In this document: positions 6,410 to 44,665 of the stretch, in pieces
How positions within the stretch are numbered: the first letter of the stretch is position 1
Layout of the letters: each line of letters opens with the position of its first letter
Source of the DNA: Guillardia theta CCMP2712
Taxonomy: Eukaryota; Protista; Cryptophyta
Length of the DNA: 49,480 nt
Assembly: GCF_000315625.1 (NCBI RefSeq)
Contig: NW_005434549.1
Coordinates: 20,516 to 69,995, forward strand
Direction: 5' to 3'
Made by a program: the position numbers and the translations under genes
The notes under the pieces: model-generated
Told to the model about the DNA's origin: nothing
Databases searched by the model: none
What the model saw: the letters and a program-made list of their open reading frames with translations, nothing else

Positions 6410-7683
6410 CTAGCTTCTCTCCCGCATGAACGCACCTTCCTCCTCTTGGAACGCCAGCATATAGCGGTCATGATACGCGTCTACTAGCCCCAGCAGACGC
6501 TCCCCGTCCGGCAGAGGACGGAGAAGCTTCTCGAGGAGAGGACGGACTTGCGGCCAGTTGACCTCGTCGTAGCTGCAGCAACGAATCGGCATGTGGACGA
6601 AGGAAGGAGCAGAAGAGTCGGGAGTATAACAGACGGAGGGAGAAGCTGAGAAATAGGAGGATGTAGAATAGGAGAAGGATAGAAGTGTTGTCGTACCCTG
6701 GTTGAGGAAGGTGGGCGTCTATGAAGCCCTCCAAGGAGTTTGGAATCTCCCAGCTGTGAAGGTGTGAGGAGACGAAGAGGAGGGAGGGAGGGTTTGTCAT
6801 ACTGCATTCTGTCGATTCGATCTCGAGAGCCGTGTCGGGGAATGAGCTCGACGTCACCTGGGAAATGCTGCCATGCTCCAACCTAGGACAAGAAAGTTGG
6901 AACGATGAAACAAACGAATCCCAAGTGAGATCAGTGCGGGAAAGGAGGTGAGGGGGGGGGGGAGGAGAAGGTTCAGACGGAGGGGGGTGAGAGGGGAGGA
7001 GAGTGGGAACCTTAGAACTCCACAATCGCTGATCGAGGTGCCACATCTCAAGGTCCGCGTGCTTGAGATTCGACGCCACATTTCGCCTCGCCTTCTCCTC
7101 CCCCAAGTCGTGAATGATTCGGTTCTCCACCGCCATCTGTCCCTCACGTTCAGCGACCAACACGCAGCTCAAGCAGCCTCTCCTCACCTGCAGGATGTTG
7201 TCTATCCCAGAAGCTCGAAGAGCTTCTTCCTCACTCCGAGGGAGATTCATCAGCTGCCAGCCCCGTCATCCTTCCTCCCACTGTCTTCAAACCTCCACCT
7301 CTTCCTCCACCCCCACCTCCTTCCTCTCTCCTCCACCCTCCCCAGTGTACCTCTCGCCAGACTTGAGCTTCGGCCCCGGCGTAAGAGATGGGAAGATGCA
7401 GAAGCCGGTGATCGGCCTCGACGCCTGCTCCCCTGCGCTCGCATGACTCGCCTCTTCCTCCAGACCTTCACCATACCGAGACAGCGCAGGGGCTCCCAGT
7501 CGCACTTGATCAATGTGGTCGGGGGCAGAAGCAAGACCCTCCTCGGGAAGCAGGAGAGGAGCGCAGCAGAAAGGGTTGTACAGGTGCAGCTTCTTGTTCC
7601 AGTCCCTGTGCGAGGGCTCAGGGAAAGAGGAAGAGGAAGGAGGGGGCATAGGAACTAAGACTAGGAAGACAAAGATGTGTGCA

Positions 7684-25363: not shown

Positions 25364-28300
25364 TCAGGCTTGCGGGCTCACGCCGAACACACTCAGCCCT
25401 GCCTCCTCCCCCATGTGCTCTGCATCCTCCTCCGCGAAAAATTGCTCGCACCAGAGCTCCCCGTCCCTCTCAAGCTCCGACTCCTGTGTGCTCGATCCCT
25501 TGGCACTGCCTTCCCCTTGCTCGATCCCTCCTGCTCTCGCCCTCTTTGTCGGACGGCCTGTTGCTTCCGGACCTTGTGGGGCGATAGCGCCTTGCAAACC
25601 ACGAGCAGCTAGGAGACAAATCAGACTACCCGCAGGTCTCTTCCTCACCCTCACCTTTCCGTGGGTTCGCCAGAGACTCCGCACCCTCTGAGTTGGCAGC
25701 TATTTGATTCTCCTCTCCTTGCATGGCACCTGCTGGCATGGTGAGGACGCGAGGAATGATGGTGAGGAGGGAGTGACAAGGCAAGAGACAAAGAAGCACT
25801 GAGTTTGATCGTAACATCGGGAAGGAGGTTGTGGGTTGTGTCAGAGCAGGAAACTGAAGTCATCTGGATTGGAGGCAGAGAGAGGACAAGGCAGTATTTC
25901 CGAGGACGAGATTGAAGTTAAGAGCAACGAGAGGAGAGGGTTGGAGGACAAGATAGCGAGAACAAGCAGCCAAGGGTTCAAGGCAGGGAGGACGGACCCA
26001 TCATCGGAGGCTGCATCATGACGCCCATTGAGCCTGGGGCTTCAAGTCATTCGCTAATATCTCGTCTGCTCCTTTGGCTTGCTTACCCGTCACTGGCGCT
26101 GCTGCCCACTGCTCTTCACGAGGAAGCATCCCTTCTATCTCCAGCTGCATCTTGGCCATCTTGTCCAGCAGTCATTTCACCTCCAGTCATGTCCTTCTTT
26201 CTCACCTGCATGGCCTGGTGCATCAGCGATGCCGCGCTCGCGCTCTCTCCAGGCGCATTCGCTCGTGGCACTCGCTGCATCCTCCAGTTGCCTCCCCTCG
26301 GCACAGAGTCCGGCATGAAGTCTGCCATCCCGACCCCCCGGAAGTTGGAAGGAAGCGGCCCTTGTCCTCCGCTCCACTGAGGTTCCATGCTAGAATGCGC
26401 AGAGTTCTGCATTCCATTCATGGGCATCACCTGCTCTAAATGCATCAGCTGACAACTTCCCCGAGCCTGACGCCTCACCATCTCGTTCCTGGGCATCGGC
26501 GGCCCCTGCCATCTTGGCATCGGCTGCATCCGCATTGGCATACTTGCAGGCATGACATGGGGAGCAAGAGTCGTTGGCTCCACGTAAGTTAACCCAGCAT
26601 TCCCGCGAGGACCCCAGCTCGCGCTCCTGCCCTTATTGGCGGCATGACTCCTGCCGACCTCATTGGGGAGTGACTGGAGCGCATAGGAAGCGGAAACGTC
26701 TGCTTGTTCTGAGAGCAACATCAGCAACAACATGCACGTGTATCATAGCCCACCGGCTGGCGCACTGGCTTGTCTAGATGCTGACCACTGCATGAAATCC
26801 CGTCAACGGCAGTCAAATCAAGTTGCATAACCGTCAGCGTACCTGGTCAGGCTTGTGAGCCACTTCCAGCCCTTGACCTGCCCTGGTGATCTTCTTCCCA
26901 TTGTCCGAGCCGCTACGAGCAAGACCTGCCTGGCGTCACTCGCAGCTCAAGGAGGCATCGCTCGTTACCCGTTGGAGGCTGAGGCTCTTCATCCCTCATG
27001 CTCCGCTGGGTCGGTTGTGGTTCTTGCAGGAAGAGATCTTGCGCGGGCCCGGAAGTGTTGCGCTGGTCCACTTCGTCTACTTTGGCAGATTTGGATCCTT
27101 TGGACACGCCCACTGGTAGTCGGGAAGCAGCCATATGAATAGTTCTCCTCCAATCCTCTATCTCTTTCTTCCACTGCTCCTCCTTCTGCTGCGTCATCTG
27201 CTGCAGATCATTTTCCAGCCTGTCCATCTCCTCCTATTGCAAGTTTCACGAGACATTAATCAAGTGCTGCATCAACAACCTGATTCTGCATGAGAAACTT
27301 TTTCGTTTCAAGCTGCGATCGGCAAGATGTGAGCCTTTGCCGATGCACTTCTGCAAGTTTCTTTGTGGAAGCCAACTTCATGCTCATGAATTCCTCTCGC
27401 TCTTTTTCTGCAAGAAAAATCACCTACTGAGAAGTTACTTCATGGTACTAACGTATTTCTTTGAGCTTGAGGTCTTCCAGGTGTTCCACGGCCTGCCTTG
27501 TTCTTGTCTGATTGTTAGGGGCAGCGACCTATTATTGAATGAGCATGAAAGGCAGGTGCAAGTACTCTCCACAAAATACCCTTGGCGAAGTCGATGACTG
27601 CTTCACATCAACAATCCCTCGGACATCTGTACTTTTCTTGCTCCCAAGGTTGCCCTGAGAGAAATCTGGCCCTGCTGGAAGTAGATTTGCGGCAGGTTGT
27701 CCGGTGTTAGCTAGCTGAGAAGTGCTCTTTTTAGCAATGTCGATCTACAAGGAAGACGAATCAACAGGGGTCAAACTTGGTAAAACCAGGCGAACACACC
27801 TCTTTTGTCTCTGCACTGTTAGCGAGATGGTTGAGGGGTCCATTAGGCTGTCTTTATTCGGAGCACGGGAAAAAGAAAAAATTAAGTTTTCTTTTCCCCG
27901 GGTTTCAAAAAATCCGAGGTTGTCGAAGTCGCACTTTATTCGAGCATTTCAAATTTTCGAAAATTAAAAGGTTTCCCGCGCACCAGGGAAGACGCTCCAT
28001 GCAGGCACCAGCGAGACCAGGCAGCATGAAGCCCTTACAAGCCAAGCCTTATGTGAGGCTTATTGCATGTCTTACGTTCCTTGATGTGTCAGACGGAGGA
28101 CTACGGAAAATTGCAGAGTTGCATGTCTTACTTGAAGAAGCATATCCTAAGCATGTTCGTTATTTCCTGCAGAAGCATGGTAGTGAAATACCAGGTTTGA
28201 CAGAGGACTTGTTGTTGTACAAGTCAAGAAATCAGCCTTGGCCAGGATCCAGCATCATGGAGTTTTACCAATCTACTAAAGATTTGATAAACAACCGTTA

Positions 28301-31300
28301 CAATCCCGAATTCCTGGCTAATTGCAATCCTGACGGCTCTTTGCCGTCTGGACGAAGTCTGGAAGAACTTCGCATGGCAACAAAGGAGCAGTTGTGGAAT
28401 AAGCACCAACTCGAACTTGTCGCCAAGAATATGCAGTCATCGCCTTCCGAACCTCCGCCGCAGACTCCCGATCCCCAAGAAGCGCAGGAGAGTCTCGCCG
28501 AATCACCTGAATTGTTGGCAGAACAGAAAAAGAACGGAAGTGGGCGTAGAAAGCAGACATCAGTCATACCTTTCGATGTCACCAACCCTATTCACAGAGA
28601 TTGGACCCCATTAGGTTGGATCGCATGGCTGCACCTTGGATTGGGTTCTCCAGAACCTCATGATAAGTTTTCACTGAAACCTAGCGGAGGCGATGTACCT
28701 CCTGCACAGAATCAGATGACACCTGACTTCCATCAGCGTATGTCGAGAGGCAGATCTGAACAACGTCGGAAATTGCGAGAGAATAATCGTCCAGCACAAG
28801 AGGACTTGGGACGTGGAGTCACAGACCCACGTGCCTCAGATAGTCTTTCCAATGTTTTCATGGCTGCAGTGGATAGACTCATGTGTCATTATCGACAAAG
28901 TCATGAACGCACACAGATGGTCAAAGAACGTAACCAGATGATCCACGAACGTACACAGAAGATCAACAATCTGCAGATGCTCATGCAAATCACAGCTCCA
29001 GGTAGTTCCGACCACGCGCAGGCTAAGGCAGAACTCGTGCAACTTTTGAAGGGTACAGCTGACAATGACAACATCCCAAGTGTGGCTGAATGGGAATGTG
29101 CGTCTGGTACACCTGGCTCGTCATCGATACCACCTGCGTCTGTGACGAATTCCAGGAACATGGGCATTGCATCTCCTGTCTCATCTGTGGTTGCCACCCC
29201 TGTATCTCTGTCGGACGAACGTATCTTTACGAATGATGTGATTGGAACGACAGAGAATTGTTCTCCTCAATCACGTGTTCGTGCAAGGCCAATGGATTTG
29301 GACAGATTGTTCAAAAAAAACAGAACGAACAATGTGTAGAAGGTCACAACAGGAATTCCTGACGCAGATGGAAACATCCATCCAGTGTGAATGAAATGTT
29401 ACTGAATTCTCACTCGATTTTATTGCAGCATCACCTGGAACTCTCGTGCCGTCATTTCGCTGTCAGTATTCCACAGCGCCGATAGCAAGTGCTTCTTTAT
29501 AATGAAGAATCAATGCGCTTTGCAATTCCATCCAGCCACTTTGTATACTCGTAGTCAAATCTTGGTCATTCTCAAGAGGAAGTCGATGATGGGAAGACGA
29601 TGATACAATAGGTTGTCGAGGAAAGGACTCACGGTTATCCATACCCTCATATTCCTCATCCTCCGTGTTTTCATCAACCTGAACATCGGCGGCGTCTGCA
29701 CCATCCGTCGTCTGTGCATCATGCGCAAGGATGATGTTCTGAAGAATACAACAAGTTATGAACATGTTGTCCACTTCATCCTTGTACCAAAAGTTGCACG
29801 GTATTTTCACACACCGGAAGCGCGACTTCAATCTTCCAAAGAAGCATTCCACATCCTTCCGACATGATTCCAATGCTCGAGACCACTGTCGTCTATCAGG
29901 ATCCACTGTGTAAGGTAAAGGGCATTGTAACACCCTCCAACGGTGATAGCCTTGATCCACCATGATCCACAATCCTTTGTGAGTTTGTACACGACCTCCA
30001 CCAACATACAAGTCAAACTCTTCTTGCGCATAACGAGTTCCCTGATGCACGGATTGCAAGAATGAATAACAACATCCCAGCGTCTCAAGCGCAATCCGTG
30101 ATCCGCCTCCTCTAGTTTCCCGCCCGTGGCCTCCTGCTCGCTCCTACACTTGATATGCAATTGTTGGATATTTCTCTTTGCCTTTATACGACGGAAGATC
30201 TTGGGCTGGACACTTGTCCCAGGGAATATGTACACAGTCACATGACGCGATACATCCGGGAAAGCCTTTCTTGCGATACATCTCTGTGGTTTTGAAGATT
30301 TCATCCGGCGAGGTCGGGGGGTGGACATACTTGGGATACTGCTTTGCCATGTTTCGACAGAACATGTGGAAAAAGTTACGATTGGATGCCTCACATGCCC
30401 CATTCCCTTCACGGATATTGTTAAAACTGTATCCTCCTCCTAACACACGCAGAACACCAAGAATCATGAGTTCAAGGGACGGCATGGGCTGCCCACACAC
30501 GTTGGTGATCTGATCATGATACCATTTCTCTTCACGAGCCAGTTTGACAATGTCAAGATAAACAGGATATGGCAAACGAAAGCTACGCCTGAATTCTTTG
30601 GCAGCACGTGACGATGGATCAGCAAGGGAAGGATCTTCCAGGAGCACAGCCCACCTCGATGCTGCATAATTCCTTGGGAGCCGAGGCTGCTCCTCCACCC
30701 TTCGCTTCTTTCGAGCTCGTGGAAGAGGTTCAGAGTCATGCAGTGACTGAGCTTGTTGAGTGACAATGTAAAGTCTCATCAATTCAAGAAGACAAGCAAC
30801 CAGAAACAAGAACTCGGGGTCTCCAACATGAACATTGTCGCCGTCAATGTCCGATGGCGACGGCATGGCTTGGGCGGGAATTATCTTTTTCAAGAAATCC
30901 AGAGCGGGAAAAAGAAAGCGAAATTTCTCCCGAAATCCAGGTCTGGAAAAAGAAAACTTTCTTTTTCCCCCCGAATAAAGTGGGGGTTGGGAGAAGTTTT
31001 AGGGAAAAGTTTCATATTTTTCCCTAAAACACGTCCGAATAAAGACAGCCTTAGACTGCAACCAGCAAGTCATGAAAAAAAAACGGAGAGAAAAGCAGGA
31101 GGTACTTCGAGCTGTAAATCATTCCAAGAGCATTCAGAGTTGCTCAAGAAGAAGTAGTTATAATGCTGCTCACAGAGGGCTCTAATGATTTTTTCATCAT
31201 CAGGATTCGCCGCAGATTTTCGCAAATGAAGTTACCTCATTTCACTGCAACTGTCCTCGGGAACAAGTTTGTTTTGACTCCAGACATTTGGAAGTCTGCA

Positions 31301-32746
31301 TTCTGTATCAGATTCGTCTTGGCTCAAGGGCATGCTCTTTGACCTCATGACATTCAGTACAACATTGTTCTCTTCCTTCTCCAGTGCAATCGAGCACACC
31401 TACACATTTCAAACCATGAGGGATCTTGTTCTCTGATCCCCGCAACAAGTAACCTGTGGCAAAAGCTTGACAAGCGCATCTGCTAAAACCTCTCTCCATT
31501 TATCATTCTTGGGCGATTGCTATCACGCAAAGATAAAATGTTATTCTAGAATTATAACGACATGGTGTGCACCTGTAGTATTTCGTTTGCTACGTAAAAC
31601 AATGCCAAACATCTCCTTGCTTGACCAGTGGATACATTTTCCCTCAACGACTCCACATACATCTTCCCAAAATATGAGTTAAATGAAACATGGAACATGC
31701 GAAATCACCTTGTGAGCAGCACTTTCATTCACTGTACTCAGCTCCAGGAAATGTTTGGAAATATCAACAATCTGTCCAAAAGTCAGCAAGCTGTGGGGCA
31801 TGAGAGAAGAGAGCAGAGGACCTTGGAGTTTGAATAACTGTTTAAGCCCCGTATCGACTCCTTGAGCTTCTTCAGTATCTCCAAAGCATCCATCACGCCT
31901 TTCTTCAACTCCTCCTTCACCCTCCTTCAGTCTCCGCTGAACTGAAAATAAATCGCTAACCGGGAGATGTGTGAGATATCTAATCCAGGATATTCAAGGG
32001 GCTTTCTTGATCATTTTCGCACCAATACCGCGAATGTGTCACTGCAACTAACAATGTGGACCCTGCACTGTCTTGGTTCCAGCACCACGCTGCCAGAGAA
32101 TGCTTTTTTCCAAGTCGATTGGTTTCTGTGAACTTTGAACAAGTTCAACGGTATTGTCTCCACATTTCAAACCTATGAGTTCCTCCTGTGCCACATGACT
32201 GTCAGTCAGCCTGGTCGCACCGGCATGCAACTGTCCGAATATTTCACAAACGCTCTGTCTATGTTTCACCACCACCCCTCCACCACCACCTCAGGCAATG
32301 TTTTCGTTACCAAAAATGCGGTTTGAGAAAGACGACCGAGGTCACGGAACTACCAAGACTGTCCCTCGGAAAAGTCCGGGGTATCACGCTACGTCATTCT
32401 AGCCTCAACCTTTTCTAACATGGATTATTGTATGTGCCTGCTATGCATACTTTCCTTTCTTGATTGTTCCATTTTCATTCCATCTTTTAACAGGAGGGAC
32501 CATTCATCCACACTCACAAGTGACACTCCTTCTCTGCATACCCCTGAAGTCAGACTAGGAGTTCTTGGGTTCCAACCTCCACGTTTCTGCCAGTGCCCCC
32601 TTCTCCCCTCCCCCTCCTCCCCCTCCTCCCCCTCCTCCCCCTCCTCCGCCGCAACATTTCTCGCTCGTTCTACATGCTATCTTTGCTTACACACATGAGA
32701 TATCAACATCTACTTCCATTGCTGCCGCGTCAGCTTCTTCTCTCAT
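25364..32746 (-). CDS. Unknown multi-exon host gene (coiled-coil, Met/Pro-rich C-terminus) interrupted by the Harbinger element
   Basis: With the element removed, exons join in frame across canonical introns: YFFLSNSECSWNDLQLE | SNGPLNHLANSAETKE | IDIAKKSTSQLANTG. A later exon reads MDRLENDLQQMTQQKEEQWKKEIEDWRR. Outer limits are approximate. Confidence 0.5.
27999..29339 (+). CDS. Harbinger accessory ORF (putative DNA-binding partner), 446 aa, intronless
   Basis: Intact ORF between the TIRs, first ATG at 27999; LPSGRSLEE motif and a C-terminal coiled coil. A Myb/SANT assignment is expected for the family but not confirmed by eye. Confidence 0.75.
   Translation: MQAPARPGSMKPLQAKPYVRLIACLTFLDVSDGGLRKIAELHVLLEEAYPKHVRYFLQKHGSEIPGLTEDLLLYKSRNQPWPGSSIMEFYQSTKDLINNRYNPEFLANCNPDGSLPSGRSLEELRMATKEQLWNKHQLELVAKNMQSSPSEPPPQTPDPQEAQESLAESPELLAEQKKNGSGRRKQTSVIPFDVTNPIHRDWTPLGWIAWLHLGLGSPEPHDKFSLKPSGGDVPPAQNQMTPDFHQRMSRGRSEQRRKLRENNRPAQEDLGRGVTDPRASDSLSNVFMAAVDRLMCHYRQSHERTQMVKERNQMIHERTQKINNLQMLMQITAPGSSDHAQAKAELVQLLKGTADNDNIPSVAEWECASGTPGSSSIPPASVTNSRNMGIASPVSSVVATPVSLSDERIFTNDVIGTTENCSPQSRVRARPMDLDRLFKKNRTNNV
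29463..30866 (-). pseudogene. PIF/Harbinger DDE transposase with an in-frame TAG inside an 82-bp foreign patch
   Basis: Single frame of 468 codons: FRRSFRLP, GFPGCIASCDCVHIPW, KGKEKYPTIAYQV*, VDQGY and RKDVECFFGRLKSRF. The stop is at 30144-30146. Confidence 0.85.
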
Positions 32747-33884
32747 CTCTGCCCGTCACCATCTTGAGAGCTTTGAGGCCTCCCCTTCGCCATCACTTGT
32801 GCCGACCCTACCCCCACCCTCTTGTCAATCCGCATACACACTTGAAATGTGACCACCCCTTCATCTTCCAATCTCTACCTACCCCCGTTACTGAATACAT
32901 GAATACCTGCACCCCACCCCTGATCAAGCTTTCTGCAGGAACCCCAAATGTCTCTCAACTACCACCCCCCTAGTGGTTCTGACATTTTACCTGATGACCC
33001 ACGTTGCTTCCTATCAACATACCCACCTGCAACTGGTGGACTTATTCATATCAGACCCCACCCTCAATCTATGATCATATAACCCCTCCATAGCTATCTC
33101 CAATCTCAACACCCTCTTTTCATACCCCAGACTTTGAAGATACCCACCCTAGACAAACATTTTTAAATCTTTATACAGTACCCCTACCCCAGAATTTGGA
33201 ACCTTGACCGGTCTTTGCTCGAAATACATATGCCTCGAGGGGTGGGTTCACAAGCCGGGGTAGTTGGGTGGAAGGGGTGTTGTGGGGCGTCTGCAGAGGG
33301 GTCTGCAGTGCAATCTGAATCGTTTGCCGAGACAATGAGGAGTACCAAGCTTTTCCTTGGGTAGTCGAGGAAAGGTAGGGTACTTGGACGGGAGGGTGGT
33401 GAGAAAGAAGGGGGTGCAAGAGGGGGGGATCAACATAAGACGAGGGTAGAGAGAAGGAGTCTACTGACGCAGGGGTGACAAAGGATAGGGAGACGTGGGG
33501 GAAGAACCACCGTGGAGATATGGTGGGTACTCAACTTGAACCAGGGGTAGGGTAGAAACCTGAACATGTCAACTGATGGAAACAAGGGTGGGGTAGTGGA
33601 GGGGGCATAATTCAAATGGGGGTTATTACGGGACACATCTCGTGGAAAGTTTCTTAATAGCAGAAATATAGATTATACTGACTAATATTGTCTAATTGTG
33701 GTATTGTAATAGAGTATTTCTCTTTTATTTAAGAAGCCAAGGTTTATTTAGTCGAAGACAATCTCGTTTGGCTGAGCTGTAGGCGAAGGAGATGAGTACT
33801 GAGACTTTTAACAGTACTTGAATTTCATACAAACTAGTACTAAAAGATTGTGCCTCAAAAACTCTTCCATAAAATTAACATTAT

Positions 33885-33924
33885 TATGACCGGGCATACA
33901 GCCGGGTATGCCCGGTCATACTAG
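33885..33924. repeat. Perfect 15-bp-stem hairpin followed by CTAG
   Basis: tatgaccgggcatac-agccgg-gtatgcccggtcata-ctag. Confidence 0.85.
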
Positions 33925-34467
33925 CAGACATAGTAATAATCGTATGTCTTGATATCAGAGGCCTAATAAGGGGATGGCTGCATTACATTTTAAAAGTATT
34001 TTATTACCCGCACTCTTATAAGTCTATCTGCAGTGCTTTCTGGTAATAGAATAGAACTCAGTTGAGTAAACATTGTATAGCATGTGAAACCCAATTGTAG
34101 TACCATAATTGTAGCTTTATGGTCGCGTGACCTCGGGCCGGAGACAATCTGTGTAGTAAAGAGGCGGACCCGGATTCCGCTCCCTGCCCCGAAGAAATAG
34201 ATTAAAAACAATCTTGTGTTTCTACAGTAGCGGTTTTCGCTGCCTCCTTCTTTTCCTAGTATTTCATTGAGGCGGGTTTGTAGGGTTTATCCTCCCCCTC
34301 CTTTGTTTGCTCCGGTTTGCCAATAATAAAAGAAGTTTGTACATGATTGCGTCTGATGCTTCTCAGTGCTACGCGTCTGGGAGCGAAAAGGGTGAACTCA
34401 GAAACGCAAAGGTGCTGGATTGCTGCATAATGACAGTCATCCCTCTCTTGGTTTCTAGATCATAGCG

Positions 34468-37094
34468 ATGCAGCAAGCAGAAGGCCTTGCCGAACATGCA
34501 CAGCAGGAGTTTCTCGTCAGGAATGCGGAGAAGAAGGCGGCATGGGACTTGGTAGCGGCGAGGAAGGCAGAGCTTGATCAGGCTGAGCTGAGCGGGGATA
34601 GAAAGAGGAAAGGAGAGGCTAACATGAAGCTCTTGTCTGCCAGGCTCGCTGTTGCCAGGCTCGAAGCAGACGAGAAGAAGAGAGTGGAAGCACGCAAGCA
34701 GGTCTGGCAGGAAGAACATGAACTAGCTGGGCTCGAAAGAGACACTGTGAGGGAAGCATTGGCACTTGTGAACGTGAGGAAGGCAGAGCTTGAACTAGCT
34801 GGGCTCGAAGAAGACCAGAAGAAGAAAGCGGAGGCTGAGTATTGGTGCACGGATGCAGAGCTCGAATTGTCAGTTGCAACTGCGAAAGCATCGCTGGCAA
34901 AGGCAGAACGGAATGATGTTGGTCGTTGCACCAGAGAATACGATATTGCATCTTATGCATTGATTTCGCATCGATTCGATGGGAGAGAAGGAAAGTTTCT
35001 TTCAGGTGAGAGTTTATGCCAGCCCTGAATGCTTTTGTTCTCATTTGATTGCTAGTTTTGAACGATATCGCCAAAACCATCAATTTGAATGAGGTTTTGA
35101 TCCGGTTGAAGGAATTCGTTCAAAACTCTCTTGACTTTGCATGGACTTCGGAATCCTCACGGGTGCGACCCAGCGAGGAATTCAGCAGCTTGAACCCGAT
35201 AGACCGAATAGTTGAGAAGGCAAAAACTGATCAAGATCCTTACTTGTGCATGATTGAGGCTTGCTCTGGCTGTGGTAAGTCACTTACCGCCGTTGATTTC
35301 TTTGTCCGGAATGCAGATGTAAGCATCTATTTTCTCTTCAATCCTTCGCAGAGGGTAGATACCGTGCAAGATATTTACGAGCCAGTAGAACAGATCACGC
35401 GACTGATAAACAAGGCGATTGAGTGCGATCTTAGTATGTTGGCAAAGAGCCATGCCGGATCTCAGGGAACCGCACCTTTGGATGCTTTGGAGGTTGATTT
35501 CGCTACGGATGGAAGGAAATTGCATTTGCTGGGGGTCCTCGCCTTCCTGTGGTCCGAGGAGACTACCTGGGCTCCGGTATCTGTAAAAGACGCTCAGAAT
35601 TGGAAAAAACGGCGCTGGGTACTTGTGGACGAGGTGATTCCTCCTCAGCAGGAAGATACGTGCATTTTCTCAGTGACTGCAAAGATTGTTCTGTTGAGGC
35701 GAGTATTGATCAACTCAAAAATTAACTGCATCCTGTTGGGGACGAACACAATGGTGATGAATTTGGGAATGGTCTCGCAAAGCTCTCAACACCTTCGCAA
35801 TAAGGTGCGAAGAATATACTGCTTTACCCATCGCTCGCTTCCTCCATACATCCTGCCCTCAGACGCTTCTGAAGAGGTCATGAATAAGGTTTTCGGAAAG
35901 GCACAGGTACCCAAGTTACTGGACCACGTGAACCCATGGACCTGCTCCCTTTTCTTGCGCGAGCTTGGCCGAGTATTAGAAAACTCCAAACCACACATGC
36001 TTATACAAAGTGTCTCGAGGACGCTGTGGCAGCTTATCACAGCGGCAAAACCAAGTTTGAGGAAGGAGTCTATCTACTGCATGTTTCAGATTGCTGCGCG
36101 TGAACCTGTTTCTCAGTTGCACATCTCCCAGGGGTTTGCTCTTTTGAATGTATGGGGCAATTATCCGCCACCCCGAAATAGTGAAGAGGCAACCGTTCTG
36201 CTCGATCTTGAGGACAGGAAGCCTGCGCTGAAGGGTACTTTTCTTTCAGAGCTGACATCGAGGTTCGCCTCTGCAGTTCTTGACCCAATCACGACAGTGG
36301 CTTGTGCGGGGGGGGGCATGCCTTTCTCTCATGCATCAGCACTTGAGGTCTTGCAGAAGATTCATTTGGATCAGAGGATCGGGCAGGAATCTCTGAGCAG
36401 AGATGCGTGGAAGCGGGATGGGAATCTGCTGGAGTCGTTTGGGGCAGTAGTTGTAATGATCAGCAGCTGGTCTCCCCCTCAGGATCTCTTGAAGAACTTT
36501 GCTTTTCATTGCGGTATGAAAGACGAGAGGAAAGTGGATGATATTCTTGCTTCTGTTGCAAACAAAGAAAGCTTCGTTGAGATGCTGACGTCGTGCATGT
36601 GCAATCTGGTCCCTGTAAGGGAGAGCGAGTATGAGCATTCCCTTTCCGCAGTCTTGGGCTCCTACGTGCGTAACAAGGACATGAAAGGCAGGGACGGTAC
36701 TTTCTCTGGGCCAGCTTCCAAATGGAGAGGAGGAGCAAAATTCAAGAATCGTTCGGCCGAGTCTCCTTTGCAAAGTAAGTCGTCCGAATACATCACAAGT
36801 CTGCTTTCACATAACCTGGATGTCAACATATTCATGGTTGCCGAGATGTCATTTGACATTGAAGGTTACATGAGCTCAATGTATGATGGCACCGAGTGGC
36901 TGGTATTGCATCTTGAAAACAAAGGAAAACAAAAGTGGACCGCCTCGACATTCCGCCGCCCAACAAACAAGAGAAAGAAAGGCGAAGCAGATTCTGTAGA
37001 TGAAAGGATGGTGGAGAAGATCCTGCGCAAAAGGGTGCTCATCGTTGTGGAGATTGGAATGCAGACAATGCCATTCTGTGGTCAACAGTGCTAG
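34468..37094 (+). CDS. Crinkler-like protein: helical header + P-loop NTPase + restriction-endonuclease-like domain, 858 aa, one intron (35006-35055)
   Basis: A GT..AG intron joins the two ORFs in frame (FLS-V-LND). Walker A EACSGCGKS, Walker B VLVDEV, ILLGTN; C-terminal RNKDMKGRDGTF...AKFKN resembles the D...ExK nuclease motif. Confidence 0.75.
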
Positions 37095-37099
37095 GTGGC

Positions 37100-38660
37100 A
37101 GCCTTCATATCGGTGCACTCCAGACGTGAGGACATTCGTGATGAACTTTGTTATTCTTGATACAAATAATTTGGTGTTGGTTGCCAACATTGTTCAAACC
37201 CTCCGAGCCATTCCTCCCCTTCGATAACAACATCCCAGCGTCTCAAGCGCAATCCGTGATCCGCCTCCTCTAGTTTCCCGCCCGTGGCCTCCTGCTCGCT
37301 CCTACTGCTCTCCATGTTGGCCTTGGCAAGCAGCTTGTCTGCCTCGACTTCACGGCAGTTTCCTCTGTCCTTCCCTCTCGCCCTCTCTCCCACACAGTCA
37401 CATGACGCGATACATCCGGGAAAGCCTTTCTTGCGATACCACTGAGCGTCTCCAGCCTCTGGACCATCTTGGAGCAGCAAGTCAGCGATGAGTCAGGGGT
37501 TGACAGCATCCGATAGCCATATCAGAGAGTTTCGACTTGGCGCTAGCGCCGACCTTGTCCAGAAGCCAGGTCCTTGAAGTACTGTGGAGCATCGTTGACG
37601 ACGGCCTTCAGGCTGGTGGTTGGTTTGCTCCATTGTGCTATGCATGGACTGGCCCGATCTACAAGCAAGTGAATGGGCTGTCCGCTCCGAGCTCCGAGGA
37701 TGCTTGTCGGGGCGTTGAGGCCAAGCTCATCTCCTGGAGACGAATGGTAAGCACTCTACAGAGAGAAAGAGTTCAGTGGTGATGTGCCGTTTTTGACATA
37801 CGATTCTTAGTGGAACTCGACCACACCCTGTCTTTTCTCGAAGGCCGTTGGAGAGGTCATCAATGGCCACCTCCTCTCCTAGCTTCTTTGCTCGCTTGTT
37901 ACATCAGCAACGCAACGGAATCACTCTCTAAGCGCTGCTCAGGATGATATGATTCGATTCCGACCACCCTGGTTCTCTACTTCGTCTTGTCTGCTGGGTC
38001 GTCGTAACTTTCCCTCTCACCACTCCCTTCTCCTGTCCACGTCCTTCAACTATCCTCTCTGGGCCCTTCGCCGATTTGTTGTTTGTTCTCAGTAAAACTT
38101 GATCCGAGTCACTATCCGTAGATTCCTGATCTGCCACTGAGTCAACGTAGATGCTCAGGCATGTCCCATTCGTCAATCCCATCCCAATCCCCTTCCAAGT
38201 CACTGGTCGTTCCCTGGGGGATGGTGTGAAAACCACAATGGAGTTCTCCGCAGTGGGAGACACCATGGGTGTGCGGCAGATTGGACGGGGCCTCGGAAGG
38301 AGTTCCAGATTCGCTCTGTGATGAGAGAATGATGATCACTGCTGGCATGGCAGTGGATACGGGAGAGTGGGTATGGAGGTTTAAATATTCTCAAAACAAA
38401 TTGAAATGCATACCTTACACTATCACAAGCCGTCATGAAAGCCAATGACTTCATTTAACTCCAAACACAGTCATGTTCACCATGCTTCAAGGGCATGATT
38501 TTGTATTTACATGCTACTCAACGAACTGAGATTCAAATCTTGCATTATTGATCAGTACAATGAGAAGAGTCCTCTTCATCCACATGACAGTACACATAGA
38601 TTCGAAGTATCTCATCATTCAAATCGGTAGTCGCGCGCGAGCAAGGCATCAGTTCGCCAT
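37100..38660 (-). pseudogene. Possible degenerate gene remnant carrying the exchanged patches
   Basis: Short coding-like pieces (EVEADKLLAKANMESSRSEQEATGGKLEEAD; VDSVADQESTDSDSDQ) but no continuous frame. Confidence 0.3.
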
Positions 38661-38705: not shown

Positions 38706-39560
38706 TTTAACTTAACTTTGAGTAAGGAAAAGGGGTGACCCCTTGTTTGTCTGGTACAATAAATTCCAGAAGTGACTACTACCGGGTACGCCCCGCGGGG
38801 CCCGCCGGCCGCGCGGGCGCCGTACGGTCACCGGGTACCGTACCGGGAGTCGAGTCTCAGTCTCGCTGATGAGCCGCTGAGCCGGGCTGGGCCCGGCAAA
38901 CTTCAGTCACAAGTTTCCGATCTCCGATCGAATGATTTCACATTGAAGTTTGGCACTCAGACTGCCGCACCGGGTGTAAACTCGGAAGCCCGGCTGCGGC
39001 TTGCTACGCCGTGACAAACTTGAAAGCGGCCGGCGGCTGACCGTAACGGCACCCAGGGTGACCCGACGGTCCGTCCGGTACGGTACGATCGGGTGACTGT
39101 TCCGAAGTTCAACCGTACAGTTCAACCAGCCGCTGAGCGGCGTCCCGGATCCACGCACTGGCGCGGCCCGGGACAAGTGAACCGTGACAGTCAAAGCCTC
39201 CGTCAAAGGCCCTCTACTACTTTCTTTACTCAAAGTTAAGTTAAAAATCAGTACGAGGACAATCACTGATCAGGAGAGTCAAGGAGGCTCCGCTTGACCG
39301 TTCAGTACTCAAAGTTCAAGTAAGCCTGACATTCCAAACCTTTACTCAAAGTTAAGTTAAAAATCAGTACGAGGACAGCCCTGACACTGTCGCACTGGCC
39401 GCCAAACGGCGACCTGATTGACCCGCCCGTTGACACTTGATTTCATAGGAGTGACGATAGGACTGGGAGGACAGCCGCTGCAACCGTTGAACGCCGCCGG
39501 TTAGAGATAAGCCTCGATCCGATGGCGAGGAGTTAAACAGACGGTCCGTTGAGATGAGGT
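38706..39560. repeat. GC-rich island with TTACTCAAAGTTAAG-family dispersed repeats
   Basis: Inverted copy at 38706-38725; 36-bp perfect direct copies at 39226-39261 and 39342-39377. Confidence 0.8.
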
Positions 39561-43616: not shown

Positions 43617-44340
43617 TAAGGAGAGTACTAGCGGCGATGGCACAGGTGGCTCAACTAGGTCAACGAGATTCGTACTGCGGAGGGATGATAGCAGGAATAG
43701 GGAGGGGAAGAATAGAGTAGAGACGACAAGCCGCAAGATGGAAGAGGGAGGGGATACAGGATAGAGTGGAGGCAGGACAGAGTGGAAATAGGATGGTAGC
43801 AGTGTCAAGAGTGGGTGAATATCAAGGAAGACGGAACGGAGAAGACCTGAGGCTGCAGATTCTTTTAGTGCGAAGTGGGTATGCCCAGGGGATATCGCTT
43901 TTCATTTAGTACCGTACTTAAAGAATAGCTGATCTTGGGGTAGCAAGGTAAATGGATTGGAATGGAAGGGGTAAAATGCTCTATTTCAAGTCTTTACTAC
44001 CAGACTGATGACAGAGGGGAACAAAAATGGGGAAAGGGGGCAGTGGATACGCCCCCCCCTGTACCCAAGGTTGGAGATTTCTTAAGTGAAGCATCAAGAA
44101 AAGTATCAGTACTGCCAGGCTCTCCAGAATTTGCTAGAGCTCGTTTAAGCCTTCTTTGCATACAAGGATCGCCCCGTTTTCATGGGAGTCTTGACGTTTT
44201 TATCCTCCACTAGTTGTATGGTTCCGATACTCAAGCTCTGTCACACGGCCGCCGGTGACACCGGGTACGCCGCTCAACCGCCGTCTCTTCCGTCGATATC
44301 TTTGAGGCGCGGCGTGACTGATGAATGAGTAACCGTCACG

Positions 44341-44665
44341 TTACTCAAAGTTAAGATAAAAATCAGTACGAGCCTCGGAGGACAATCGGCCAGGCCCTGA
44401 GAGTCGAGTCGGAGGGCACAGCAGGATTAGGTTTGGTTCTCGCTGTCTTTCTCTTCTCGCCGTTTGGCCTGTGCGACAGTGTCAGGGTCAAGCCTCCTCG
44501 ACTCTCCTGATTGTCCTCGTACTGCACGCTTAACTTTGAGTCACCGTCACATGAAAGTCGTCGGCGGCCGGGCCGGGAGGCTTGACCCTGACACTCAGTG
44601 ACTGTCGCACACTGGCAGCCTGGCCAAACGGCGAGAAGAGAAAAGACAGCGAGAACCAAACCTAA
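44341..44665. repeat. Imperfect long palindrome of the TTACTCAAAGTTAAG repeat family
   Basis: Arm 44427-44496 (ttaggtttggttctcgctgtctttctcttctcgccgtttggcc...aagcctc) is the reverse complement of 44577-44665, apart from short insertions. Confidence 0.8.

Follow-up and report, generated by a model that had tools for sequence, protein, structure and literature searches.

Exact tracts shared in register by a Harbinger transposase gene and a decayed gene in Guillardia theta, and their probable origin by coupled template switching

Two short tracts within a 49,480-nt stretch of the Guillardia theta CCMP2712 genome (contig NW_005434549.1, positions 20,516 to 69,995; the whole stretch is termed the window) appear to have been copied in opposite directions between the transposase gene of a PIF/Harbinger element (locus A) and a decayed gene approximately 7 kb away (locus B). 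We consider the tracts to be real and recent footprints of coupled template switching, during either break repair or replication restart, in which each locus once templated the other, and we place the probability of this reading at roughly 0.6. Copies and paralogues of both loci were sought through 87.1 Mb of the same genome in 669 contigs. Labels such as C4, C6, C14, C45, C106 and C133 denote contigs of this genome, and copies of the element are named by the contig on which they lie.

The original prediction, made from the sequence alone, had described two exact pairs in the same order and orientation, with offsets of 7158 and 7160, surrounded by non-homologous flanks and spacers of approximately 85 bp, and both parts of that description held. 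Self-comparison of the window matched positions 30066-30147 with 37224-37305 (82 of 82 nt identical, offset 7158, direct orientation) and positions 30232-30279 with 37392-37439 (48 of 48 nt identical, offset 7160, likewise direct and in the same order as the 82-bp pair). BLAST E-values within the window are 2e-40 for the 82-bp pair and 4e-20 for the 48-bp pair. With the exception of a 38-mer family that resembles MITEs (miniature inverted-repeat transposable elements), these are the sole dispersed exact repeats of at least 30 bp in the 49-kb window. Outside the two tracts, identity on diagonals 7150-7170 is 23-27%, a random level, with a longest run of 11 bp, and the spacers (84 bp in locus A and 86 bp in locus B) and all flanks are therefore non-homologous. 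No homology or repeats at a spacing of approximately 7.16 kb that would be able to mis-pair sister chromatids were found, the best candidate being a chance-level 11-mer. Structure-prone DNA or hairpins are not supported at either site, with fold z-scores of -0.18 and +1.10, and the window contains no N-gaps. For two independent events with the donor free to lie within 3-20 kb, the chance of offsets agreeing within 2 bp is approximately 5/3,200 to 5/20,000 (about 0.0003-0.002). The four tracts around the junctions are each 80-86 bp long, with each locus totalling approximately 167 bp, and the replacement in locus A is nearly length-neutral, from 83 to 80 bp.

Locus A lies in an element that carries a transposase domain, terminal inverted repeats (TIRs) and a 3-bp target-site duplication of the TWA type (TTA), all of which are characteristic of Harbinger elements. 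Its features are the following:

27846-31052, minus strand: PIF/Harbinger element A, with 16-bp perfect TIRs GGCTGTCTTTATTCGG / CCGAATAAAGACAGCC
27843-27845 and 31053-31055: TTA target-site duplication of element A, read from the sequence
30144-30893, minus strand: N-terminal open reading frame (ORF) of the transposase, 249 aa, with its TAG stop supplied by the 82-bp patch
29463-30059, minus strand: C-terminal ORF of the transposase, 198 aa (C-terminal half of DDE_Tnp_4), in frame with the N-terminal ORF through the patch
30066-30147: 82-bp tract, foreign to the element by alignment with the C133 and C45 copies
30148-30231: spacer a3, 84 bp of native transposase sequence not shared with locus B
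30232-30279: 48-bp tract, native, coding for YRKKGFPGCIASCDCV and including the region of the first catalytic Asp; donor of the copy in locus B

Homology of element A to other copies stops at 27843 and 31053. Both halves of its transposase match Pfam PF04827 (Plant_tran) and PF13359 (DDE_Tnp_4). For the second ORF of Harbinger elements, which encodes a Myb/SANT-like DNA-binding protein, a 520-aa ORF inside the element (27777-29339) that is without a Pfam match is at most a candidate.

At least four further copies of the element are present in the genome (C133, C45, C4 and C14). In the C133 copy the 478-aa ORF is intact and its DDE_Tnp_4 domain complete (residues 220-387), the C45 copy is frameshifted, and the C4 and C14 copies are internal-deletion derivatives. 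A comparison with other copies, which had been proposed as a check, recovered the replaced segment: the native sequence displaced in element A is 81-83 bp long (83 in C133, 81 in C45) and unrelated to the 82-bp tract. In C133 this segment codes for CVDHSGKALSITRGFPGSFNDKMIARYD, that is, the GFPGSFNDK catalytic segment of the G-S-x-N-D region. Anchors that are 83 bp apart in C133 are separated by 80 bp in element A, which preserves the frame. The 82-bp tract opens with TAG in the transposase frame, and the rest of that frame in element A is open throughout. The C133 comparison thus sustains the earlier claim that the longer patch is foreign to the transposase, takes the place of the G-S-x-N-D segment with the frame kept, and introduces a stop. 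The shorter patch was likewise correctly taken for transposase sequence, as it codes for transposase residues and aligns with all Harbinger copies. Both junctions of the 82-bp tract in element A carry a 2-bp microhomology in common with the native element, AT at 30066-67 and AC at 30146-47. By deleting the segment of the second catalytic Asp and adding a stop, the patch most likely inactivates the transposase, to judge from the sequence. The 82-bp tract is absent from the four other copies, leaving element A as the sole patched one.

Several further observations concern the transposase gene. An interval of 108 nt with GT...AG ends (30042-30149, minus strand) spans the entire foreign patch, and its splicing, a possibility read from the sequence only, would give a 440-aa open frame (joining ...IAYQ to GTRYAQ...) lacking the second catalytic Asp segment. 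The C133 transposase (L002:1550-2986), the sole fully open copy, reads CECVH where element A and the C45 copy read CDCVH, which places a Glu at the presumed first catalytic Asp. The internal deletion of the C4 and C14 copies overlaps the segment at which element A is patched, which may point to fragility of the element at this place.

Locus B matches the 5' part of an intact-looking gene on C6 (C6:939800-942800, minus strand), which encodes a signal peptide followed by approximately seven QWGIG-containing repeats and then a coiled coil. Because this match is broken into five blocks with deletions, and the start codon is gone, we regard locus B as the relic of a decayed gene for a secreted protein. 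It adjoins a duplicated block, and its features are the following:

34442-37316, plus strand: duplicated block, with 87-88% identity to a tandem pair of copies on C106
37260-37967, minus strand: remnant of a gene paralogous to that on C6, with five blocks matching the 5' part of that gene and four deletions relative to it
37260-37345: relic block, followed by a 369-bp deletion relative to C6 with a 5-bp microhomology, GCCTC
37341-37391: relic block, followed by the 48-bp patch where C6 has 940686-941741 (1,056 bp)
37440-37562: relic block, followed by a deletion of approximately 539 bp
37560-37729: relic block, followed by a 69-bp deletion that takes out the start codon
37729-37967: relic block, at the end of the match to C6
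37224-37305: 82-bp tract, native and source of the copy in locus A; the two C106 paralogues have it continuous with its flanks, as C6 does in part
37306-37391: spacer b3, 86 bp, native to locus B, matching C6 940226-940265 and 940635-940685 joined across the 369-bp deletion
37392-37439: 48-bp tract, foreign, with blunt junctions and identical to locus A only

On its left, the 82-bp tract forms part of the duplicated block, in which there are also two ORFs that match nothing in Pfam, one of 681 aa (35049-37094) and one coding for a coiled coil (34468-35028). An origin of locus B as a processed retrocopy was rejected: what locus B lacks in comparison with C6 falls within long ORFs, and GT-AG ends are absent from the first gap, which is the one that was examined. 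The duplicated block is found three times in the genome, once in the window and twice on C106 (232271-235354 and 238898-241902), where the tandem copies have a 6,627-bp period and are 97.8% identical to each other.

The direction of copying can be read from the paralogues. Relative to both C106 copies, the 82-bp tract in locus B has a 21-bp deletion, and the tract in locus A is identical to that of locus B including this private deletion, the C106 copies being only approximately 90% identical over 68 bp. The donor of the 82-mer was therefore locus B itself. Conversely, the 48-mer in locus B is identical to element A, with other Harbinger copies 88-94% identical (3-6 of 48 positions differ), and no native equivalent of it was found in the 16 kb of C6 that were compared. 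As it is identical to element A alone and nothing similar stands at the C6 site, its donor was element A itself. No third genomic source of either tract was found; the 82-mer matches only locus B, the two C106 copies and C6, and the 48-mer only Harbinger copies and locus B. The earlier proposal that each locus carries a tract native to the other is thus borne out, with amendments to its interpretation. A reciprocal exchange had been suggested, yet both donors retain their own tract, and what took place was two-way, non-reciprocal copying in opposite directions. The companion claim, that each locus overwrote a tract of the other, stands for locus A, where 81-83 bp were replaced, and may not carry over to locus B, where the tract lost was not necessarily an equal one. 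Since C6, the sole paralogue covering the site, has 1,056 bp at the position of the 48-mer, locus B reads as a deletion plus an insertion. Divergence is 0 over the 130 bp of the patches as against 7-17% between paralogues, so that both copies are either recent or artefactual.

The change in locus A fits a known process, capture of nearby DNA by gap filling, and it is the return copy in locus B and the common register that are unusual. In transposition-independent gap filling of single-copy Pack-TIR elements (Tan et al. 2021, PMC8277862), a TIR element that has suffered an internal break is repaired by a template switch to nearby sequence of the same chromosome; the parental copy lies in cis, the median microhomology is 2 bp, and the internal gaps amount to a few percent of the element. 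Element A resembles these cases (PMC8277862) in being a TIR element with a gap filled by DNA that is not of transposable element (TE) origin and in having no second copy of this kind in the genome; its donor (37224-37305) is on the same contig 7.16 kb away, each breakpoint has a 2-bp microhomology, and the gap of 83 of 3,207 bp is approximately 2.6% of the element. It differs from them (PMC8277862) in that transposon sequence has been copied back into the parental locus on the same diagonal, and in that the fill is almost exactly the length of the gap. Filler DNA in decaying elements of the Ac/Ds type is a related precedent for the events in locus A (PMC3260210).

Locus B invites comparison with the templated insertions of synthesis-dependent microhomology-mediated end joining (MMEJ) or polymerase-theta end joining (PMC2943611, PMC7165422). 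As there, the insert has an identical counterpart nearby and sits at a deletion junction, and the locus shows deletions of the microhomology type. It departs from them in having a template 7.16 kb away as opposed to tens of bases, long tracts (48 and 80 nt) and blunt junctions (PMC2943611, PMC7165422). The pairing of junction microhomology with a template within approximately 100 bp of the break, by which polymerase-theta insertions are recognized, is not seen in locus B; if there were two breaks, each template would be situated approximately 85 bp from the end of the other break. Family-A DNA polymerase domains (PF00476) are encoded at no fewer than five loci of the genome, on C61, C7, C91, C21 and C120. 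In FoSTeS (fork stalling and template switching), microhomology-mediated break-induced replication (MMBIR) and break-induced replication, serial switches occur between non-homologous templates at 0-2 bp of microhomology, with nearby templates favoured. The switches described here are likewise between non-homologous templates with 0-2 bp of microhomology. However, those models predict changes only in the molecule under repair and are not known to predict a two-way pair in register.

Under coupled template switching, an internal gap of 81-83 bp in the otherwise intact transposase gene would have been filled with 78-80 nt copied from locus B, while 48 nt copied from element A would have been placed between two segments of the already decayed gene. 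We take the two events to be coupled from their common diagonal (7158/7160) and the near length-neutral replacement in locus A. They could have been coupled by two routes. In the first (a), two concurrent breaks or forks would leave 3' ends that prime on each other's flanks, approximately 85 nt inward of the ends. In locus A, the 3' end on the left side of the spacer would prime on locus B at the AC microhomology and copy the 82-mer in the leftward direction; in locus B, the 3' end on the right side of the spacer would prime on locus A and copy the 48-mer rightward; each extended end would afterwards rejoin its proper partner. This route predicts the layout that is observed, with the new tract to the left of the spacer in locus A and to its right in locus B. 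In the second route (b), which would proceed in two steps, the first patch would serve as an island of identity that pairs the loci, and an unclipped heterologous 3' tail of approximately 85 nt would then be extended roughly in register. Both routes would require 85 nt of unpaired DNA to be kept in register (a recombinase filament, chromatin or contour length might achieve this), and holding unpaired DNA in this manner is outside established repair models. Both loci have moreover been subject to deletions, which also favours this reading: locus B carries several, one of them with 5-bp microhomology, and the C4 and C14 copies of the element have their internal deletion.

Three features are unusual: the mutual templating, the common diagonal within 2 bp, and the near length-neutral replacement in locus A. 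They could be accommodated by a single coupled event in which two ends or forks 7.16 kb apart templated each other in register, with a ruler of approximately 83 bp setting the tract lengths (83 replaced, 80-82 copied, spacers of 84 and 86, the sum being one nucleosome repeat of approximately 167 bp). Such an event would amount to mutual trans-templated synthesis or to in-register extension of unclipped heterologous tails, neither of which is part of current repair models, and we hold this stricter version to be doubtful.

A number of points weigh against coupled template switching. The junctions have no independent read or contig support, and protein searches for a second source of them returned nothing from this organism, a result that is uninformative as records of this genome were possibly excluded from those searches. 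A common register and a swap that nearly conserves length (83 to 80 bp) would be expected of a consensus mosaic made from two stacked sequences. Known templated insertions need no register, and long heterologous 3' tails are normally clipped, which here would have replaced the 84-bp spacer too. The junctions in locus B are without microhomology, unlike those in locus A, and there is a single case.

Several of these points would be explained if the tracts were an artefact of assembly or consensus, with a true genome that holds an intact transposase and an unpatched locus B, and a mosaic formed from stacked loci or in a correction step. The same diagonal (7158/7160), the near equal-length replacement (83 to 80 bp), the 100% identity, the otherwise intact ORF and the lack of any independent confirmation of the junctions would all fit. 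However, nothing else is common to the two loci that could make an assembler stack them, and the window is free of N-gaps. The assembly is presumably a Sanger/Arachne one, and at 48 and 82 bp the patches fall far below the length of a Sanger read, and each of the four junctions would have to be wrong in most reads; four junctions with 0-2 bp of overlap would also be hard for an overlap- or k-mer-based assembler to produce. The patch in locus A, moreover, looks like a described biological process with 2-bp microhomologies (PMC8277862). On balance we judge an artefact to be unlikely, though well worth keeping in mind.

The remaining explanations fare less well. Two unrelated templated insertions made at different times, with a coincidental common offset, would account for the different junction types (microhomology in locus A, blunt in locus B) and suit a locus B with a history of separate deletions, but the agreement in offset has a chance of approximately 0.0003-0.002 with donors free to lie within 3-20 kb, and both patches show zero divergence; we consider this explanation improbable. 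Among the causes that the original prediction had offered, template switching fits best, and targeted inactivation of TEs is unsupported, there being one case and other family copies that are intact or simply deleted. A directed form of genome defence, in which the catalytic cores of transposases are overwritten by DNA from the neighbourhood, might be suspected from the loss of the second catalytic Asp segment, the added stop, and a lesion of a second lineage (C4/C14) that overlaps the same segment. Nonetheless, just one copy is patched while C133 is intact, the C4 and C14 lesions are plain internal deletions of the abortive-gap-repair kind, and writing transposase sequence into a dead host gene is not expected of defence; we think such a process very improbable indeed. 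Gene conversion of the ordinary kind, driven by homology, or a double crossover that was reciprocal between the loci, would yield exact tracts in the same order and orientation, and ectopic (non-allelic) gene conversion shares with the present case a short tract copied non-reciprocally from an unchanged donor. It requires flanking homology, though, which is absent outside the tracts here, and neither locus has lost what the other gained, the spacers being native to their own loci. On the sequences compared, the missing flanking homology and the retention of both tracts by their donors already refute conversion and crossover alike.

If the tracts are real, a complex repair event has been recorded cleanly and without divergence, before and after, and intact paralogues of both loci let each junction be resolved to the single base. 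A Harbinger transposase that was apparently active would have been inactivated by the capture of 80 nt of neighbouring DNA, and 16 transposase codons would have entered a host gene relic. The common register and the tract lengths of approximately 83 bp would then suggest that a physical constraint was at work (paired ends, for instance, a ruler formed by a filament or by chromatin, or forks that were coupled), of a sort that is absent from standard template-switch models. If they are an artefact, they represent a rare type of reference-assembly error by which TE annotation would be misled.

A 47-bp pair on C106 (237607-237653 and 242451-242497) was considered as a second case and rejected: it brackets one copy of the duplicated block, in a duplicated unit of 4.8 kb, and lies where two repeat families have their edges, and we read it as a long flanking duplication of an inserted or duplicated segment. 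Its copies are 46 of 47 identical, lie 4.8 kb apart and are found nowhere else in the genome; one directly adjoins the end of the first repeat family, many of whose members are 100% identical, and the other adjoins the beginning of the second.

Between the two loci, the strand composition switches within 32500-33650 from a C-rich tract (GC skew of approximately -0.5, with CCCCT and CCT runs) to a G-rich tract (approximately +0.47). The switch is near 33,230, roughly 500 bp off the midpoint between locus A and locus B. Beyond locus B, a short MITE-like repeat (CTTTACTCAAAGTTAAGTTAAA...) is found at 38706-38730, 39221-39261, 39340-39377 and 44339-44376, in both direct and inverted copies.

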